Shown in pieces: positions 1,880 to 59,703 of a DNA stretch of 64,000 nt. The notes under the pieces were generated by a model. That model was not told where the DNA came from, did no database searches, and worked only from the letters and a program-made list of their open reading frames with translations. Origin of the DNA: Neoechinorhynchus agilis (Eukaryota; Animalia; Acanthocephala). How positions within the stretch are numbered: the first letter of the stretch is position 1; each line of letters begins with the position of its first letter. The stretch is taken from the NCBI GenBank assembly GCA_051530055.1, contig CM121342.1:16197480-16261479 (forward strand), read 5' to 3'. Both the position numbers and the translations under genes were made by a program.

Positions 1880-4250
1880 CAACTCCGCGCGAAATGCTCC
1901 GAGAAGCTGGAGGACGGCGATCGTGTGCCGTTCGACTTGTAAGCGGAACGGACCGCCTACTCGCGCCGAACAAGGACATCCTCGACTCTTTAAAATTGAA
2001 GCACCTTCCGCGCAGGCGGAGTTGCTTCAAGCCAAATTATGATTCGTCGGGTACAGAGCCCGACCGCGACCCCCTCATACCCATTGCCGACTCCATCGTC
2101 ACTTCCGCTCTGATATCCTTTCCCCCATCGTCAGCTCGAGGGCATGATGATTTGAGCCCTCGACACTTACGGGATTTGATCTGCTTCTCTTCTGGAGCTC
2201 AAGGTACGCGACTGCTGAACGCAATCACCGAGCTCACACGCGTAATCATTCGCGGTCCCGTACCTCCTCCGGTCGCTCGTCTACTCTGCGGTGCCAAGCT
2301 GATCGCTTTCACAAAAACGGTGGAGGGGTTCGTCTGATTGCCGTTGGTTGTACCTTCCGTCGACTGGCATCCAAAGTCGCGTGTCAGTTCGCCACCGATC
2401 GATTGATCGATCAACTGTTGCCGGTTCAATTAGGAGTCGGAGTTCCTGCTGGAGCCGAGGCGGCCGTACATGCAGCAGGAGCGTATAGTCGGAATGGTAT
2501 CCATAAGGGAACGGCTATGGTCATGCTTGACATGGAGAACGCGTTCAAGTCAATATGCCGCACCGCGATGACAGAGGTTGTCCACCAGCACATACCAGAA
2601 ATCTACCAGTACGTGTCCTTGTGCTACGACCATTCCAGCATGCTGCTGTTCGGCGAATTCCAGGTCAAATCAGCAGAGGGCGTTCAACAAGGTAATCCTT
2701 TAGGTCCTCTGCTGTTCTCATTGACGATCAATCATCTTGCACACAGCTCTTTGTCAGAGTTGTCGATGTGGTACCTCGACGACTGTTGCATCGGAGGGAA
2801 AAACGACCAACTCATCGGCGACATCAACAACATCTCCTAAATGGGTGCCGATATCGGACTATTCCTGAGAACGGACAAATGCGAAATAATTTCGGACGAC
2901 CAAGAGGATGCACCAAGACTGCTCACCGTACTACCCGGAGCAAAGACAACTGCAATCGACTCAGCTGACATTCTCGGGTCTCCAATCGGTAACCTGTCCA
3001 ACCTGGAAACGTTCCTCTCAAAAGCCATCGATCAATTTCGGCTCACTGCCTCCAGGCTCTTGCACATCACGCGACACGACGCCCTGTTCATACTAGGACG
3101 ATGTCTGTCGCTACCGAAGATTGCGTACCTTCCATGGACTTCTCCATGCTTCAAGTCAGTACTCACAAGGGATTTCGACAACTGCGTTCGATCAACCCTG
3201 TCAGAAGTCCCTAACCTACGACTGTGCGACACAGCATGGAAACAGGCGATCCTTCCCATTCGATTCGGCGGTCTTGGCATCCAGAATGCCACCGAAATAG
3301 CAATTCCTGCCTTTTCGTCATCGATTTCGGTCTCTTCAAACCTGGTGCTGAGAATCATCCCACCACACACTCGACTAGAGTCACATCCACCACTTGAACT
3401 GATTGAAGCGCACGCTCAATGGACATCAATGTTCGGGCAGGTCGTTCCAACGAAAACAATCTCCCAAAAACTTTGGACTACCTTGCTCCACGCTGCATAT
3501 TATCAGCAGCTTCTCAACTCATGCTCATCTCCGACCGATAGTGCTCCTCTCCTGGCAGTCTCAGCTCCACACTCCAACGACTTCTTGAAGGCTTTCCCGA
3601 TCACGGCTGACCGTCGCTGTGGGATTTCGGTTGGGCATCGATTTCTCAGGCTCATATACATGTCGGTGCGATGAGACAGTGAACTGGTCGGGAATTAACG
3701 GCCTTGACTGCAAGCGTTCATATGCTCGCCACGCACAGCACTCAGCAGTCAACCGCATAGTCAAGGAAGCCCTCTCAACGGCCGGTTTTCCCGCTCGACC
3801 CGAATCAGTCGGACTCTCCCGAAACGATGGTAAACACCCTGATGGAGCGACTCTCCTCCCATGGTGCTCCGGGAAAATACTGGTTTGGGATTTTACCTGC
3901 CCCAACACGCTCGCAGCATCCCACTTACGGGATGCCGCCTCAAAAGCGGGAGCAGTCGCGAGCTTTAGCGAGGAAAAAAAGCGGCAGAAGTATTCCTCGC
4001 TCGATGGGCATCAATATATGTTCATCCCGATTGCGGTGGAAACACTGGGATGCCTCGGAAAAGAAGCCGATTATTTTTTCTCCTGACTGGGAAAGATGCT
4101 GAAATTTGCCACCGGCGATATGCGCTCCAGCAGCTTCCTGCTGCAGCGAATCAGCGCGGCGATCCAATGCGGCAATGCCGCGGCCATCAAGGAAGCTGCG
4201 GAACAATCATAACGTATGGTATTGCGGATTTGATATGACTGCGAAATAAA
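1880..4250 (+). mobile_element. CRE-clade non-LTR retrotransposon, second subfamily: RT plus RLE, lacking the N-terminus, with frameshifts and stops
   Basis: Motifs KLEDGD..AVRLVS, KHLP, DMENAF, SAEGVQQGNPLGPLLFSL, WYLDD, RFGGLGI, CRC..HSAVNRIV..DGKHPDG..VWDFTC, EEKKRQKY, FIPIAVETLG and QRISAAIQCGNA, spread over ORFs 1894-2337, 2403-2840, 2841-3674 and 3619-4086. Confidence 0.92.
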
Positions 4251-50019: not shown

Positions 50020-51487
50020 TCATGGTTTTTGTTTTTGCTTCATATCTTCTTGCACGTTTCTGAGATATATCCGGGGCTTCGCTCCTGCCTCAGCACCTTC
50101 GTATCCTTTGTGCCAGTCGTATCCTTCAGCATATGCTGCCCATTTCCCGGTTGAATCAATATCGCAACACGTCAGGGGTTGCTTCTTTGCCAAGTCAGAT
50201 CCCTTCAATTTCGTCCTAGATTGCTTATCCCATAATCCATATTTGCCATCTGATCCGACTGTCATCATTGTATCATAAGCCGGATTAACGGCTATATCAT
50301 TAACTGTGTACACTTCCTGGAATCCAGCGGCATTCACCGGCAATCGATGGCATTTGAACGAAAATGTATCGCTTGAATGCTCAGGAGATATTGCGGTAAC
50401 GCTAACGCGACCTTCGATGCTGCCACAAATGTAGCCACGAGGCTGACCAGTTCGAGGGTAAGCGGCTACGCATTTCACTTGGTATTTGAGGTTCGACTCA
50501 GTTTTGTGAAGATAGTCGCAGTGATCTCGGATAACGAATCATGAATCCTATTTTTAGTCAATTCTTAGGGTAAAACCAGACACTATTTTACACTTGTCAC
50601 AATAGATTGACACTAAGAACATTTTTTTGACGCCGAACGGCGGTGTCATAAGGCATGCAAATCATCGCCGATGATGATAGTTGAGAAGTTTAAGAGCTGA
50701 AATTTACAAAAAGAAGTCTAATGAATGAAAATTCACGATAAAAAATCGACGCGTAACTTTTTCTTTAAAAAACCAAACTAAAAGGGTGTATTAATAATTG
50801 AAATGTTAGACAGTAAAGACTTATCAATTTACCTAATCAGGTTTTCGATCACTCCCCTTCGACAGTCACTGCGTCTTTCCTCCTACTGTACTCGACTGGC
50901 TGCGGTTCTAATGTATATATCCGTACCATTCGATCAGCGGTTACGACTACGGCCATCGGACCACAGACATCGGCGCAATAAACTCTCTCTCCCAGGTCGA
51001 GTTTCTTGATAGGCTCGGCCTGTCTAAGATCCCAGAACTTAAGCGTCCGGTCCCAAGATCCGGTCATAAGGCAACTGTAACTTGAGGTCTTGATGTAATT
51101 CACCGTTTTCACGGGTAAATCATGAGCTGCCACTTGAATGTACTTGTCCTCGGCTAATGACCATCCTCGGACAATCTTATCACAGCCAGCCGTGAACGCG
51201 AAACGGCCGTCGTCAGACCAACAACAGTCCAAAATACTGTGCCCGTGGTTCTTTTGAGCTTTAAGAACGGATGTTCCATTGTTCAAATCGACCTGCCAAC
51301 ATGCTACGTCGCCAGCCCAACTGGAAGCCATTAAATAACATTCAGATAGTGCACCAGGAGAAAACTGGAGCCGACTTATCGTATCGGCAGGTACATTTAA
51401 CACTTCAGTCTCTCCCGGTGATACCGAAGATGCAGATTGGAGAGAACCAAAAATACTAGAAGATCCAAGCTTTCCAAAAACGCTCAT
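50020..51487 (-). CDS. RAE1: mRNA export factor RAE1/Gle2 (WD40), 2 exons with a ~380-bp intron
   Basis: DTISRLQFSP, SCLMTGSWDRTLKFWDLRQ, ERVYCADV, GSIEGRVSV, FSFKCHR, VYTVNDI, TVGSDGKYGLWDKQSRTKLK and AYAEGYDWHKGYE. Confidence 0.95.
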
Positions 51488-51744
51488 CTTGTCATGAAGC
51501 GAGTATTTTACCCCTTTTGCTAATTAAAATATGTTGAACTCTTTCGTATCTAAACCGCATTTTTAAAACGATTTTAGAATTTATTAATTGCCAGATAACC
51601 GAAATTTCGGATAATTTTACTATGTATTTCTCGTAATTTTTTTAGTATGCTGAAGTTAAGAAACTTTACAAATTATTTATGTATTAGTTGATTTTGCTGA
51701 ACTATCTATGGTCGTTTAAAACAGAGTACTTTCTTGGATTATAT

Positions 51745-52062
51745 TCGGAGGAGCCAACCTGTGTCAGAAAATTTGACATTCAATATATGTCCCAGCTGCT
51801 TACGAATTACCCCGTCGAGCTCTCCTAACAATTTGTCTTCTCCGAAACATGGAGCTGTTCTTAGCTTATGAAGCAATTTTGGCATATAGAGGCAATTCTT
51901 GATCAAGAAGAGACCCTCATGTGCCGAAAGCTCAGAAGTTCGGCGGCCGAGCACCTCCATTTTCGGGATTTGTGCGCGCAGGTCCTTCGCAACATTCTCA
52001 GCAAGAACGCAGCTCCCGAGGAGTATGAGCTGGTCAAGGGTAGCAAAGATAGATGCTGACAA
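51745..52062 (-). mobile_element. Internal fragment of a CRE-clade RT related to the 283-1690 copy
   Basis: LGSCVL..HEGLFLIKNCLYMPKLLHKLRTAPCF..LNVKFSDTGW parallels HEALFLLRNCLYIPKMLYKLRSAPYF..INTQFSDETW. Confidence 0.8.
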
Positions 52063-52141
52063 GTGTGTGGATCCTGTATTTTTTACATTAATAAAACGTG
52101 TTTATTATATTTATATATTTATTTCCTTAATAAGCTCTAAC

Positions 52142-55100
52142 AGCATTCGACAGCGTTTATTGGATTCGAACGATATGGATAAAACCAAAGCATTTCAAAT
52201 GACACTAACACTCGAAGCCGCACAAGATCAAGCGAACGAGTATTTGCCGGGGTATCGCGATTCAGTAATTGATTCAGCGACAGAAAAAGATCGTATGGAG
52301 GGTCAAACTGAGACGCCGTCCAACGGAGAACATACGGTTGCTACGATTCAACGAGCACGAAAACAATGCCGGTATTGCGGGAAATGGTATCATCATAGGA
52401 CTCAGTGTCCAGCACGAAATGCGGTCTGTCATTATTGCAATAGGCACGGTCATATTCAAGCTGTATGCGAGGTAAAGCTGAGAAGTAAAGGAAAAAGCAT
52501 AGTGTCGACCATCGTCTCAAGTGCTACAAAATGATATGATTCAGCACTCGAGGACTCAATCATAGATATAGAACTCGATGGGTATGCATCGAAGGTACTC
52601 GTAGACAGCAAAAGTGCAACCAACTTCATTGACTCTGATTTAGTACGGCAGAACAACGCTGTCATTATTGCAATAGGCACGGTCATTTTCAAGCTGTATG
52701 CGAGGTAAAGCTGAGAAGTAAAGGAAAAAGCATAGTGTCGACCATCGTCTCAAGTGCTACAAAATGATATGATTCAGCACTCGAGGACTCAATCATAGAT
52801 ATAGAACTCGAAGGGTATGCATCGAAGGTACTCGTAGACAGCAAAAGTGCAACCAACTTCATTGACTCTGATTTAGTACGGCAGAACAACGCTGTCATTA
52901 TTGCAATAGGCACGGTCATTTTCAAGCTGTATGCGAGGTAAAGCTGAGAAGTAAAGGAAAAAGCATAGTGTCGACCATCGTCTCAAGTGCTACAAAATGA
53001 TATGATTCAGCACTCGAGGACTCAATCATAGATATAGAACTCGATGGGTATGCATCGAAGGTACTCGTAGACAGCAAAAGTGCAACCAACTTCATTGACT
53101 CTGATTTAGTACGGCAGAACAATGCTGTCATTATTGCAATAGGCACGGTCATTTTCAAGCTGTATGCGAGGTAAAGCTGAGAAGTAAAGGAAAAAGCATA
53201 GTGTCGACCATCGTCTCAAGTGCTACAAAATGATATGATTCAGCACTCGAGGACTCAATCGTAGATATAGAACTCGATGGGTATGCATCGAAGGTACTCG
53301 TAGACAGCAAAAGTGCAACCAACTTCATTGACTCTGATTTAGTACGGCAGAACAACGCTGTCATTATTGCAATAGGCACGGTCATTTTCAAGCTGTATGC
53401 GAGGTAAAGCTGAGAAGTAAAGGAAAAAGCATAGTGTCGACCATCGTCTCAAGTGCTACAAAATGATATGATTCAGCACTCGAGGACTCAATCATAGATA
53501 TAGAACTCGATGGGTATGCATCGAAGGTACTCGTAGACAGCAAAAGTGCAACCAACTTCATTGACTCTGATTTAGTACGGCAGAACAACGCTGTCATTAT
53601 TGCAATAGGCACGGTCATTTTCAAGCTGTATGCGAGGTAAAGCTGAGAAGTAAAGGAAAATGCATAGTGTCGACCATCGTCTCAAGTGCTACAAAAACGA
53701 TAAGGTCTCAGCACTCGATGACTCAATCATAGATATAGAACTCGAAGGGTATGCATCGAAGGTACTCGTAGACAGCAAAAGTGCAACCAACTTCATTGAC
53801 TCTGATTTAGTACGGCAGAACAATGCTGTCATTATTGCAATAGGCACGGTCATATTCAAGCTGTATGCGAGGTAAAGCTGAGAAGTAAAGGAAAAAGCAT
53901 TGTGTCGACCATCGTCTCAAGTGCTACAAAATGATATGATTCAGAACTCGAGGACTCAATCGTAGATATAGAACTCGAAGGGTATGCATCGAAGGTACTC
54001 GTAGACAGCAAAAGTGCAACCAACTTCATTGACTCTGATTTAGTACGGCAGAACAACGCTGTCATTATTGCAATAGGCACGGTCATTTTCAAGCTGTATG
54101 CGAGGTAAAGCTGAGAAGTAAAGGAAAAAGCATAATGTCGACCATCGTCTCAAGTGCTACAAAATGATATGATTCAGCACTCGAGGACTCAATCATAGAT
54201 ATAGAACTCGATGGGTATGCATCGAAGGTACTCGTAGACAGCAAAAGAGCAACCAACTTCATTGACTCTGATTTAGTACGGCAGAACAACGCTGTCATTA
54301 TTGCAATAGGCACGGTCATTTTCAAGCTGTATGCGAGGTAAAGCTGAGAAGTAAAGGAAAAAGCATAATGTCGACCATCGTCTCAAGTGCTACAAAATGA
54401 TATGATTCAGCACTCGAGGACTCAATCATAGATATAGAACTCGAAGGGTATGCATCGAAGGTACTCGTAGACAGCAAAAGTGCAACCAACATCATTGACT
54501 CTGATTTAGTACGGCAGAACAACGCTGTCATTATTGCAATAGGCACGGTCATTTTCAAGCTGTATGCGAGGTAAAGCTGAGAAGTAAAGGAAAAAGCATA
54601 GTGTCGACCATCGTCTCAAGTGCTACAAAATGATATGATTCAGAACTCGAGGACTCAATCGTAGATATAGAACTCGAAGGGTATGCATCAGAAGGTACTC
54701 GTAGACAGCAAAAGTGCAACCAACATTATTGACTCTGATTTAGTACGGCAGAACAACGCTGTCATTATTGCAATAGGCACTGTCATTTTCAAGCTGTATG
54801 CGAGGTAAAGCTGAGAAGTAAAGGAAAAAGCATTGTGTCGACCACCGTCTCAAGTGCTACAAAATGATATGATTCAGCACTCGAGGACTCAATCATAGAT
54901 ATAGAACTCGATGGGTATGCATCGAAGGTACTCGTAGACAGCAAAAGTGCAACCAACTTCATTGACTCTGATTTAGTACGGCAGAACAATGCTGTCATTA
55001 TTGCAATAGGCACGGTCATTTTCAAGCTGTATGCGAGGTAAAGCTGAGAAGTAAAGGAAAAAGCATAGTGTCGACCATCGTCTCCAAGTGCTACAAAATG

Positions 55101-58100
55101 ATATGATTCAGAACTCGAGGACTCAATCGTAGATATAGAACTCGAAGGGTATGCATCGAAGGTACTCGTAGACAGCAAAAGTGCAACCAACTTCATTGAC
55201 TCTGATTTAGTACGGCAGAACAATGCTGTCATTATTGCAATAGGCACCGTCATTTTCAAGCTGTATGCGAGGTAAAGCTGAGAAGTAAAGGAAAAAGCAT
55301 AGTGTCGACCATCGTCTCAAGTGCTACAAAATGATATGATTCAGCACTCGAGGACTCAATCGTAGATATAGAACTCGATGGGTATGCATCGAAGGTACTC
55401 GTAGACAGCAAAAGTGCAACCAACTTCATTGACTCTGATTTAGTACGGCAGAACAATGCTGTCATTATTGCAATAGGCACGGTCATTTTCAAGCTGTATG
55501 CGAGGTAAAGCTGAGAAGTAAAGGAAAAAGCATAGTGTCGACCATCGTTCTCAAGTGCTACAAAATGATATGATTCAGCACTCGAGGACTCAATCATAGA
55601 TATAGAACTCGATGGGTATGCATCGAAGGTACTCGTAGACAGCAAAAGTGCAACCAACTTCATTGACTCTGATTTAGTACGGCAGAACAACGCTGTCATT
55701 ATTGCAATAGGCACGGTCATTTTCAAGCTGTATGCGAGGTAAAGCTGAGAAGTAAAGGAAAAAGCATAGTGTCGACCATCGTCTCAAGTGCTACAAAATG
55801 ATATGATTCAGCACTCGAGGACTCAATCATAGATATAGAACTCGATGGGTATGCATCGAAGGTACTCGTAGACAGCAAAAGTGCAACCAACTTCATTGAC
55901 TCTGATTTAGTACGGCAGAACAACGCTGTCATTATTGCAATAGGCACGGTCATTTTCAAGCTGTATGCGAGGTAAAGCTGAGAAGTAAAGGAAAAAAGCA
56001 TAGTGTCGACCATCGTCTCAAGTGCTACAAAATGATATGATTCAGCACTCGAGGACTCAATCGTAGATATAGAACTCGAAGGGTATGCATCGAAGGTACT
56101 CGTAGACAGCAAAAGTGCAACCAACTTCATTGACTCTGATTTAGTACGGCAGAACAATGCTGTCATTATTGCAATAGGCACGGTCATTTTCAAGCTGTAT
56201 GCGAGGTAAAGCTGAGAAGTAAAGGAAAAAGCATAGTGTCGACCATCGTCTCAAGTGCTACAAAATGATATGATTCAGCACTCGAGGACTCAATCGTAGA
56301 TATAGAACTCGAAGGGTATGCATCGAAGGTACTCGTAGACAGCAAAAGTGCAACCAACTTCATTGACTCTGATTTAGTACGGCAGAACAACGCTGTCATT
56401 ATTGCAATAGGCACGGTCATTTTCAAGCTGTATGCGAGGTAAAGCTGAGAAGTAAAGGAAAAAGCATAGTGTCGACCATCGTCTCAAGTGCTACAAAATG
56501 ATATGATTCAGCACTCGAGGACTCAATCGTAGATATAGAACTCGAAGGGTATGCATCGAAGGTACTCGTAGACAGCAAAAGTGCAACCAACTTCATTGAC
56601 TCTGATTTAGTACGGCAGAACAACGCTGTCATTATTGCAATAGGCACGGTCATTTTCAAGCTGTATGCGAGGTAAAGCTGAGAAGTAAAGGAAAAAGCAT
56701 AGTGTCGACCATCGTCTCAAGTGCTACAAAATGATATGATTCAGCACTCGAGGACTCAATCGTAGATATAGAACTCGATGGGTATGCATCGAAGGTACTC
56801 GTAGACAGCAAAAGTGCAACCAACTTCATTGACTCTGATTTAGTACGGCAGAACAACGCTGTCATTATTGCAATAGGCACGGTCATTTTCAAGCTGTATG
56901 CGAGGTAAAGCTGAGAAGTAAAGGAAAAAGCATAGTGTCGACCATCGTCTCAAGTGCTACAAAATGATATGATTCAGCACTCGAGGACTCAATCGTAGAT
57001 ATAGAACTCGATGGGTATGCATCGAAGGTACTCGTAGACAGCAAAAGTGCAACCAACTTCATTGACTCTGATTTAGTACGGCAGAACAACGCTGTCATTA
57101 TTGCAATAGGCACGGTCATTTTCAAGCTGTATGCGAGGTAAAGCTGAGAAGTAAAGGAAAAAGCATAGTGTCGACCATCGTCTCAAGTGCTACAAAATGA
57201 TATGATTCAGCACTCGAGGACTCAATCATAGATATAGAACTCGATGGGTATGCATCGAAGGTACTCGTAGACAGCAAAAGTGCAACCAACTTCATTGACT
57301 CTGATTTAGTACGGCAGAACAACGCTGTCATTATTGCAATAGGCACGGTCATTTTCAAGCTGTATGCGAGGTAAAGCTGAGAAGTAAAGGAAAAAGCATA
57401 GTGTCGACCATCGTCTCAAGTGCTACAAAATGATATGATTCAGCACTCGAGGACTCAATCGTAGATATAGAACTCGATGGGTATGCATCGAAGGTACTCG
57501 TAGACAGCAAAAGTGCAACCAACTTCATTGACTCTGATTTAGTACGGCAGAACAATGCTGTCATTATTGCAATAGGCACGGTCATTTTCAAGCTGTATGC
57601 GAGGTAAAGCTGAGAAGTAAAGGAAAAAGCATAGTGTCGACCATCGTCTCAAGTGCTACAAAATGATATGATTCAGCACTCGAGGACTCAATCGTAGATA
57701 TAGAACTCGATGGGTATGCATCGAAGGTACTCGTAGACAGCAAAAGTGCAACCAACTTCATTGACTCTGATTTAGTACGGCAGAACAATGCTGTCATTAT
57801 TGCAATAGGCACGGGTCATTTTCAAGCTGTATGCGAGGTAAAGCTGAGAAGTAAAGGAAAAAGCATAGTGTCGACCATCGTCTCAAGTGCTACAAAATGA
57901 TATGATTCAGCACTCGAGGACTCAATCGTAGATATAGAACTCGATGGGTATGCATCGAAGGTACTCGTAGACAGCAAAAGTGCAACCAACTTCATTGACT
58001 CTGATTTAGTACGGCAGAACAACGCTGTCATTATTGCAATAGGCACGGTCATTTTCAAGCTGTATGCGAGGTAAAGCTGAGAAGTAAAGGAAAAAGCATA

Positions 58101-58960
58101 GTGTCGACCATCGTCTCAAGTGCTACAAAATGATATGATTCAGCACTCGAGGACTCGGTACCGTATAGTGAACTCGATGGGTATGCATCGAAGGTACTCG
58201 TAGACAGCAAAAGTGCAACCAACTTCATTGCATCGAAGGTACTCGTAGACAGCAAAAGTGCAACCAACTTCATTGACTCTGATTTAGTACGGCAGAACAA
58301 CGCTGTCATTATTGCAATAGGCACCGTCATTTTCAAGCTGTATGCGAGGTAAAGCTGAGAAGTAAAGGATAAAGCATAGTGTCGACCATCGTCTCAAGTG
58401 CTGATCCAGGGCAAGCACTGCTACTGGAGAAACTCCACATGATTGAGTTTTTCAATATAAAAGGAAACCTATGCTTAAATTCAGTTTGCTGAGTTGGATT
58501 AAACCAAGCCCTGTTTATGTCAGAAAATTCAATATAACGAACAAGAACGATGACAAAGTGGAGGAAGCTACAATAAAAGGTATAAATCCTTACAATGCAC
58601 TCATTCGGTACAAAGATGGCAAGGAAGGTGTAATCTCGACCAGAGATCTGCCTCGACATCCACATAATCGGAGTACTAATGAAGAAATGGATAATTCTAA
58701 CGATTCCTGAAAAATCGATGAACCAGATTCGAATAACGATACTGGCCATGCAAACGCAGGAGGTTCAGACCGAACAGGTGTAGAAGGAAATCTCGACAAG
58801 ACGTCTCTATGTGAAGGTGCGGAGGATGATACTGGAGCGAATAATGAGGACAACAGGAATCAGCGATTTGTACGCCGAGGGAAAAGGATACGGAGACCTC
58901 CCCCGTACCTCGAACAATATCAGTGGAGAAGAATGTAGTGATAACCTACTCGACGTTGCA
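52142..58960 (+). mobile_element. Internally deleted Ty3/gypsy LTR retrotransposon: gag 3' half, amplified gag/protease junction, integrase C-terminus, PPT and possible LTR start
   Basis: gag IRQRLLD..TLEAAQ; two CCHC knuckles CRYCGKWYHHRTQC and CHYCNRHGHIQAVC; protease VLVDSKSATNFID; IN C-terminus TGETPH..SWIKPSPVYVRK..INPYNALIRYKDGKEGVISTRDLP; RRPPPYLEQY; purine tract ggagaagaa (58925-58933) followed by tgtagtg. Confidence 0.88.
52426..58402 (+). repeat. Tandem array of ~25.6 copies of a 233-bp unit (retrotransposon-derived satellite)
   Basis: The unit ctgtcattattgcaatagg...gtacggcagaacaa(c/t)g recurs with a 233-bp period (ORF track starts 52456, 52689, 52922, 53155, 53388, ...) and near identity. 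Confidence 0.98.
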
Positions 58961-59127
58961 TTTAGTGATAACCTACAGATCGAGGAGCGTGCTCAATTGA
59001 ACGCTTAGAATTGGGTACTGCAATGCCTAGGAGATTAAGTTAAAAAAAATTTAAATGGAAGATATCGTTGATTCTTAACGTCGTTCAAACGCAGAAAAAG
59101 GGATGATTTTTTAGATTTAAGCATGAA

Positions 59128-59703
59128 TTACGTTGATAAATTCATAAGCTGGTAAAGAACGTCATTTTCTTCCATTATGCTCGACTCCATCCTTATCTCT
59201 GCGTCGTACATTAGTTCAAGTTCCTTATAGACTTTATATGCCAGATACTCAATAAACAATCGAATCAATAAGGATGGGATGGCTATTACTGTGAACACTG
59301 CGCTGTGCTTCACATCAAATGCCAATAAGGTGCCTATGGCAATTCCAAACGCCAATGCGGTTTGGGCAACAAAGATGATAAGTGGTACAAAGAGTCGAAG
59401 CTTTCTGTGACTCGCAAAGATCCCAGTTCTGATACTCGAGAAAATAACAATGGCGATCGTCGGAACACTGAAGTATTTGTATATTTCTGAATATTGTATC
59501 GGTTGTTCTTGGCTCGTCGAATTAGCCGAAAAGTGGAGTAACGAAAATGTGACGGCCAAGCAGATAACCAAGTAGACGTGTAGGATAGTCAATGCAAACA
59601 ATCGAGTTCGCCTGAAACATTTTAACCCAATCGCCATTTCGTCGAAAGGGAAGCTTAGCAATGTTAGGAAAGTCAAGCAAACTATGAGAAAGTGCAATGT
59701 CAT
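59128..59703 (-). CDS. Hypothetical multi-pass (about 4 TM) membrane protein, single coding exon; may start at 59637 (MAIG)
   Basis: 191-codon ORF with four hydrophobic stretches and an acidic C-terminal tail; no family recognised. Confidence 0.6.
   Translation of the reverse strand: MTLHFLIVCLTFLTLLSFPFDEMAIGLKCFRRTRLFALTILHVYLVICLAVTFSLLHFSANSTSQEQPIQYSEIYKYFSVPTIAIVIFSSIRTGIFASHRKLRLFVPLIIFVAQTALAFGIAIGTLLAFDVKHSAVFTVIAIPSLLIRLFIEYLAYKVYKELELMYDAEIRMESSIMEENDVLYQLMNLST

Follow-up and report, generated by a model that had tools for sequence, protein, structure and literature searches.

A tandem array of a 233-bp gag–protease segment within a Ty3/gypsy-like retrotransposon remnant of Neoechinorhynchus agilis

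A 64,000-nucleotide stretch of the genome of the acanthocephalan Neoechinorhynchus agilis (GCA_051530055.1, contig CM121342.1, C2:16197480-16261479; hereafter the window, to whose first letter positions given without a contig or locus name refer) contains a 5.98-kb tandem array of 233-bp units at 52426..58402 of the + strand. The near-identical, head-to-tail units, as expected of a transposon-derived tandem repeat, correspond to the stretch of a retrotransposon that joins the gag zinc knuckles to the protease, and the array still lies within a remnant of its parent, which by its domain order is a Ty3/gypsy-like element. The array probably originated by DNA-level duplication inside a dead copy of this element, followed by unequal exchange and conversion; it is non-coding and most likely neutral.

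Array anatomy and parentage

Tandem Repeats Finder reported a period of 233 bp with 24.9 copies, 98% matches and a score of 11144 at 52426-58230. An 18-bp anchor occurred 26 times, at distances of 233-235 bp and finally of 278 bp, and the array end at 58402 corresponded to 25.65 unit lengths, comprising 24 full units, unit 25 (278 bp) and unit 26, which is a 100-bp stub. The repeat count and the 26 anchor starts thus confirmed the ~25.6 near-identical copies that a preliminary description, made from the sequence alone, had placed here. The penultimate unit 25 contained an internal 45-bp duplication (58184..58275, + strand), detected by Tandem Repeats Finder and adjoining a cluster of ~9 substitutions at ~58146-58170, which marked a degenerate array edge. 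No further tandem array was found in the first 52 kb of the window.

Direct reading of the sequence revealed in each unit, in this order, the second CX2CX4HX4C knuckle, CHYCNRHGH[I/F]QAVC (with I in units 1 and 7 and F in all others), a short linker with an in-frame TGA, and LVDSKSATNFID. The unit spans the region from the second Cys-Cys-His-Cys (CCHC) knuckle to a point shortly beyond the protease motif, with the N-terminal protease reading DSK and not DSG; the content originally proposed for the unit, namely the second knuckle, the end of gag and the protease N-terminus, was therefore correct. The array is non-coding: 233 is not divisible by 3, and stops close all reading frames. The unit's own peptides gave only chance-level matches to Pfam. 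A structured RNA or ribozyme in the unit was rejected as well, with no Rfam match at E ≤ 0.1 and no unusual DNA fold of the unit (z = +0.9).

The preliminary description had proposed a search for the unit elsewhere in the genome. This search, performed with one unit against the whole assembly (46,219,100 bases in 102 contigs), recovered the array itself, a second array at C2:16298662-16299882 (array B) and three single copies at C3:7802139 (91% identity), C2:10667577 (87%) and C2:10703403 (87%). Contig C1 contained no unit match, and C3 contained one non-tandem copy only. All three single copies were colinear with the unique gag sequence plus unit 1 and ran through both unit boundaries. Their BLAST alignments stopped at the unit end, and reading of the sequence beyond this point showed continuation into the rest of the protease and then into reverse transcriptase (RT) and RNase H, all absent from the array. 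The monomer is thus homologous, at 87–91% identity, to an internal segment of non-tandem transposable element copies; array units were 9% different from the C3 copy and 13.8% different from the C2:10.67 Mb copy. The three colinear copies bore out the proposal that a retrotransposon supplied the unit from its gag-knuckle/protease stretch and that the unit remains in the context of its birth.

The copy at C2:10.67 Mb (L020) carried both CX2CX4HX4C knuckles and the protease motif DSG within one open frame. In the C3 copy (L018), the pol order was protease (PR; 3216-3629), RVT_1 (E = 1.4e-4, below the cutoff) and RT_RNaseH (86.7 bits, above the cutoff). The Asp_protease_2 match was sub-threshold (19.1 bits versus a cutoff of 24.3), as was the rve domain in the related copy L023 (30.4 versus 32.6), and the knuckles, which had no Pfam match to zf-CCHC, were recognized by eye from their motifs. 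A CCHC gag followed by an aspartic protease in one frame, together with the order PR, RT, RNase H and integrase (IN) with a Ty3-type RNase H (RH), are the characteristics by which Ty3/gypsy elements are assigned. On this domain evidence, the parent is a Ty3/gypsy-like retrotransposon belonging to a dead and low-copy family. No direct repeat of at least 80 bp, as expected for a pair of long terminal repeats (LTRs), was found around the best integrase relative (on C1).

The remnant that encloses the array extends from 52118 to 58977: the array is preceded by a gag tail of 308 bp and followed by an integrase tail that, with the terminus, measures 575 bp. The unique gag tail (52118..52425, + strand) is truncated at its 5′ side and holds the first CX2CX4HX4C knuckle at 52367-52408, as read from the sequence; homology to copies L020 and L021 begins exactly at 52118, upstream of which these two copies extend as gag. 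The left context, where the gag remnant ends, is a 107-aa fragment of an open reading frame (ORF) of an abundant retroelement resembling a long interspersed nuclear element (LINE) (51739..52062, − strand), which had no Pfam match and at least 150 scored same-genome matches, many of them within ORFs of 500-1200 aa. At the right side, a C-terminal tail of integrase interrupted by stops (58403..58933, + strand) is fused to unit position 100 via an internal deletion. The ORF at 58471-58710 (79 aa) in this tail showed 80% amino acid identity to part of a 331-aa C1 ORF matching rve, and the DNA of the tail was 86–96% identical to the integrase tails at L032, L024 and L026, with homology to all three ending at 58977. 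Roughly 3 kb of PR-RT-RH-IN sequence is estimated to be missing from the remnant.

The 3′ end of the remnant is a 44-bp terminal piece of the TG...CA type (TGTAG...CTACA; 58934..58977, + strand), in which two copies of a 14-bp motif flank an 11-bp core. In L020, the ends of a ~290-bp region (3793-4082) match both halves of this piece, which there lie ~235 bp apart, and the 44-bp terminus represents either an LTR of very small size or one that collapsed between direct repeats of 11 bp; it has no 5′ partner within the window. The array is thus embedded in its parent, as the preliminary description stated, with unique gag before and unique integrase after it, but this parent is a doubly truncated remnant and not a whole element.

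Junctions, unit variation and the second array

The loop-back between successive units joins '...cagaacaaYgc' of the protease to 'tgtcattattgc...' of the knuckle. In the other copies, the equivalent of 'cagaacaaYgc' continues with 'aaagacag', and the equivalent of tgtcattattgc is preceded by 'aatgcggtc'. Because the three single copies run colinearly across both unit boundaries, the loop-back is a rearrangement junction specific to the array locus. The short similarity that had been noted at this junction was present as a patchy likeness over ~12 bp, but exact microhomology amounted only to ~1 bp. At the right join (58402/58403), where unit position 100 meets integrase, the junction alignment likewise showed only patchy similarity; since the unit holds sequence beyond position 100, amplification preceded or accompanied the PR-to-IN deletion. 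The loop-back junction was identical in all units and in array B, pointing to a single origin, and, apart from the loop-back of array B, no other genomic copy carried either the loop-back or the gag-IN junction.

Array B, located 43 kb downstream, consists of 5.2 units (95% overall) and has the same junction in the same orientation. Its units differed by 1.9% from the window units and by 2.4% from one another. Like the window array, it was dimorphic at unit positions 120, 137 and 154, with 76T present in 3 of 4 array B units compared to 2 of the 24 window units. The last unit (B05) was far more diverged than B01-B04, its 22 differences being mostly novel rather than ancestral. Array B starts and ends mid-unit, with non-homologous junctions on both sides. 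A segmental duplication linking both arrays was rejected, as nothing else was shared across 15 kb around array B. Array B is a relocated piece of the same array family. It shows that the tandem structure did not come from a single accident of assembly and that the family did not form only recently.

The mean pairwise difference among the 24 full units was 1.43%. Four unit positions were dimorphic: 137 (A/G, 11/13), 154 (T/A, 15/9), 232 (C/T, 16/8) and 120 (C/A, 21/3). The many combinations of these sites recorded in the preliminary description were confirmed, all 8 combinations of 137, 154 and 232 being present, and identical units were found far apart (4 = 19 = 20; 5 = 15 = 21). Sites 137 and 232 are CpG transitions; recurrent CpG deamination behind the all-combinations pattern was rejected, since the genome CpG observed/expected ratio of 1.03-1.23 gave no sign of hypermutability driven by methylation, and the combinations are left to be explained by exchange/conversion or consensus mixing. 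A higher-order repeat or similarity between neighbors was also rejected (no lag periodicity, p = 0.18, Mantel r = −0.14).

The transversion sites 120 and 154 formed three haplotypes only, in the series AA to CA to CT, with no fourth gamete. The outgroup-like AA haplotype survived only in the interior units 7, 10 and 12 and in B01, and the edge unit 1 carried derived states. These derived states in an edge unit indicate that new variants spread across the units by concerted evolution, rather than the array being freshly amplified. Adjacent units with different backbones also shared private variants (77A in units 8-9 and 200A in units 9-10), a sharing that fits either short conversion tracts or polishing smear. 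All of the seven 1-bp indels were insertions, several of them in short same-base runs; those at ~54690, 55084, 55551, 55992 and 57813 had been recognized previously, and two more were found in unit 6. Tight clusters of 4-9 changes were present in unit 6 (53693-53720), unit 25 (58146-58170), B01 (L017 3845-3850) and B05 (L017 4682-4760). These clusters and insertions may represent unpolished Oxford Nanopore Technologies (ONT) or consensus errors, as the preliminary description had suspected for its five indels, or tracts of error-prone repair. The right-hand edge was degenerate in both arrays (unit 25 and B05).

The left neighbor of array B is a Penelope-like element (RVT_1 and GIY-YIG) that is 98–99% identical to other copies and is without its last ~220 bp. 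This element (L017 1811-3667; C2:16296810-16298666) belongs to a young family, and its 636-aa ORF runs into array B. The 5′ end of the element carries an inverted segment of 117 bp, which copies L033 and L035 share. An insertion of the Penelope-like element and array B as one chimeric retrotransposed unit, made by an RT jump from a transcript of the array to Penelope RNA and bounded by a target-site duplication, was rejected despite a 6-bp match of the outer flanks: the left LINE continues differently elsewhere, and the right flank is a 454-bp satellite in phase. This right-hand satellite extends for at least 15 kb and is a major repeat of the genome (615 first-look candidates), with blocks at C1:99-149 kb, C2:2.557-2.571 Mb, C2:16.300-16.315 Mb and the end of C3; the stretches assigned to it comprise L019 1-8192 (C3:7806152-7814343), L049 1-9740 (C2:16305000-16314739) and L017 from 4884 onward. 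The Gypsy-like copy on C3 and array B both directly adjoin blocks of the 454-bp satellite.

Other tandem repeats and genes in the surroundings were as follows. The last 1.8 kb of contig C3 (L019 8193-10000) consist of a tandem repeat with a 67-bp period (26.9 copies, 97% matches). Telomere repeats of the TTAGGG or TTAGGC type were not seen at the C3 end, and the last 10 kb of C2 contained no tandem repeat. A 267-bp tandem array with at least 10.6 copies and 98% matches occupies C2:4002000-4004815 (L050 1-2816); its membership in the 233-bp family was rejected, with no blastn or tblastx similarity between the two. The 233-bp window array lies near the chromosome end (C2 = 16,375,937 bases) in an intergenic locus with host genes on both sides. 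Downstream, minus-strand ORFs start at 59128. Upstream lies a WD40-repeat host gene, Rae1/Gle2-like by eye only; its first coding exon (50849-51487, − strand, 212 aa) starts at 51487, ~250 bp from transposon debris, and the array is located ~0.9 kb upstream of this exon.

Routes of amplification

From the anatomy, parentage, junctions, second array and variant pattern described above, we infer an order of events, a mechanism of exchange and conversion, and neutrality. A dead, 5′-truncated Ty3/gypsy-like copy in an intergenic gap would have undergone an illegitimate DNA-level duplication of a 233-bp segment with almost no microhomology at the breakpoints. The two copies would then have grown to ~25 units via out-of-register homologous exchange between sister chromatids or homologues, while exchange and short-tract conversion would have kept the units alike and spread new variants among them. 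A later internal deletion would have fused the last unit to the integrase tail, and part of the array may finally have been relocated by 43 kb to a site bordering a major satellite block. This four-step account agrees with the degenerate right edges of the two arrays and with the way derived variants have spread. The array had originally been described as caught at birth; this timing was not supported, in view of the 1.4% distance between units, the 1.9% distance of array B with its decayed edge unit, and the derived variants at the edge unit of the window array.

Several points weigh against the account of in situ duplication and unequal exchange. Neighboring units were not significantly more alike than distant ones (lag-1 permutation p = 0.18), leaving a weak local signature of unequal exchange, and the left edge unit was not degenerate; the missing neighbor effect and the intact left edge fit the four steps less well. 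The neutrality of the array is an assumption. Furthermore, because this is a hybrid assembly of pooled worms, the unit count, the seven insertions, the clusters of substitutions and the assignment of variants to individual units could be partly artefactual. Finally, unequal exchange is indistinguishable from a rolling-circle origin with the present data.

A rolling-circle route would begin with excision of a 233-bp circle, the concatemer copied from it re-entering the genome by homologous recombination in the window array and by end-joining in array B. With non-homologous junctions on both sides, mid-unit ends and nothing else in common with the window, array B does resemble a captured concatemer, and the good mixing of the units, with no effect of distance, is also consistent with such an origin. 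However, duplication in situ is the more parsimonious alternative to reintegration in place and exactly in register with gag, the strong divergence of B05 relative to B01-B04 better fits the edge of a resident array than a fresh capture, and there is no direct evidence of circles, which together make this route unlikely. The claim that the array had been amplified by a rolling circle or by repeated template switching and then converted was too strong, as such amplification is not separable from ordinary unequal exchange.

The quality of the assembly bears on a further alternative, in which one or a few real units were inflated by the assembler or polisher and alleles of pooled worms were mixed. 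The genome was obtained from pooled males and females by MaSuRCA assembly of ONT and Illumina reads, followed by purge_dups and Hi-C scaffolding and polishing, yielding 102 contigs (46.2 Mbp, N50 of 16.4 Mbp) with three major contigs (PMC12690905). The pooled sample and hybrid pipeline, the exclusive occurrence of insertions among the 1-bp indels, several in same-base runs, the error-like local clusters in units 6 and 25, and the almost random distribution of the dimorphic sites are what inflation and mixing could produce. In contrast, assemblers usually collapse rather than expand tandem repeats, and a 6-kb array is well within the ONT read length; array B independently shows the same junction with its own variant frequencies (76T in 3/4 versus 2/24) and unique flanks, and the structured haplotype series at sites 120 and 154 is not noise. 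An artefactual array is therefore distinctly unlikely. For the proposed shuffling by conversion, the variant mosaic was indeed observed, but it may in part be a consensus artefact of the pooled-worm hybrid assembly.

A single complementary DNA could also have acquired, through template jumps of the element's own RT, both the initial duplication and the PR-to-IN deletion; it would have been integrated and then expanded at the DNA level. The location of both rearrangement junctions inside the element, with little microhomology, and the 3′ terminus at 58977, which is the normal end of the family, are compatible with this origin. The remnant, however, has neither a 5′ terminus nor upstream gag, being cut at 52118 against an unrelated LINE fragment; neither junction occurs in other copies of the element; and RT jumps would yield 2-3 copies and not 25. 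We regard such an origin of the rearrangements as very unlikely.

The preliminary description had also called the array a satellite and had suggested that it could serve as a seed of heterochromatin or of a centromere, or as a source of PIWI-interacting RNAs (piRNAs) directed against the retrotransposon family. The first term was not borne out, as ~31 units at two loci of one chromosome (~25.6 plus 5.2 units, both arrays on C2 and 43 kb apart, the main one between host genes) do not make a classical satellite, for which long arrays or many copies at several, typically heterochromatic, loci are expected. Nor is the array a general centromere repeat, since its ~31 units lie on a single chromosome; a centromeric satellite is expected at the centromere of every chromosome or in association with CENP-A, and tandem copies were found on C2 only. 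In most animals, piRNA clusters give rise to dense small RNAs of ~24-32 nt with a ping-pong or phasing signature. Small-RNA libraries of N. agilis have been published (PMC12256650). Although acanthocephalans including N. agilis retain piRNAs (PMC12256650), and although array B abuts a large satellite block, a functional array is highly improbable, given the confinement of its units to one chromosome, the position of the main array between host genes and the dead, low-copy state of the target family; the heterochromatin or centromere seed was unsupported, as was the piRNA source, nothing in our analysis bearing on any of these roles.

Relation to other transposon-derived repeats

To our knowledge, repeats of this kind have not been described in acanthocephalans. 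In maize, CRM1TR and CRM4TR, which derive from centromeric retrotransposons, are centromeric tandem arrays of rearranged Ty3/gypsy pieces made of LTR and untranslated-region segments; the N. agilis array differs from them in being intergenic, near a chromosome end and composed of gag-protease coding sequence. It is well established that LTR, gag or pol parts of LTR retrotransposons can give rise to satellites and tandem repeats, and a two-stage model of duplication followed by expansion through non-allelic homologous recombination has been presented for them (PMC12628747). The N. agilis family agrees with the satellites reviewed there in being a tandemized segment of an element, gag and pol domains being listed among their sources; compared to them, it is very small (~31 units, two loci) and is still attached to a fragment of its parent. 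Arrays internal to retrotransposons are well documented in plants; short tandem arrays, occasionally expanding, are found inside the genome-dispersed Ogre/Ty3-gypsy LTR retrotransposons of Lathyrus sativus (Vondrak et al. 2020, PMC7004042). In both species the short arrays lie within LTR retrotransposons, with the parent context recognizable at the array edges, whereas in Lathyrus the arrays are carried by many copies and spread by retrotransposition, and in N. agilis amplification affected coding sequence of a single dead, truncated copy, none of the other copies having the repeat. The Lathyrus arrays reportedly reside in non-coding parts of active elements.

Taken together, these comparisons indicate that the route from mobile element to tandem repeat followed here is already known, and no function of the array is indicated. 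The locus provides a clean and traceable animal case, in which the parent, both breakpoints, the later deletion and the relocated daughter array are all readable, and it may be useful for teaching and, as a marker locus, for following how arrays turn over from one worm to another. Current understanding of how satellites originate stays as it is, and the locus would gain greater weight only if the frequency of such arrays in the N. agilis genome proved exceptional. A broader, though doubtful, proposal is that five or more unrelated retroelement families (Gypsy, Penelope and R2/CRE-like) have each had internal fragments made into arrays with units of 150-270 bp, and pieces of these arrays moved to the margins of the 454-bp satellite, owing to a lineage-specific bias in repair or replication. 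If this were true, satellites would be made and relocated in this genome at an unusually high rate, possibly tied to the heavy gene loss of acanthocephalans, and N. agilis would offer a natural setting in which to follow satellites as they arise.

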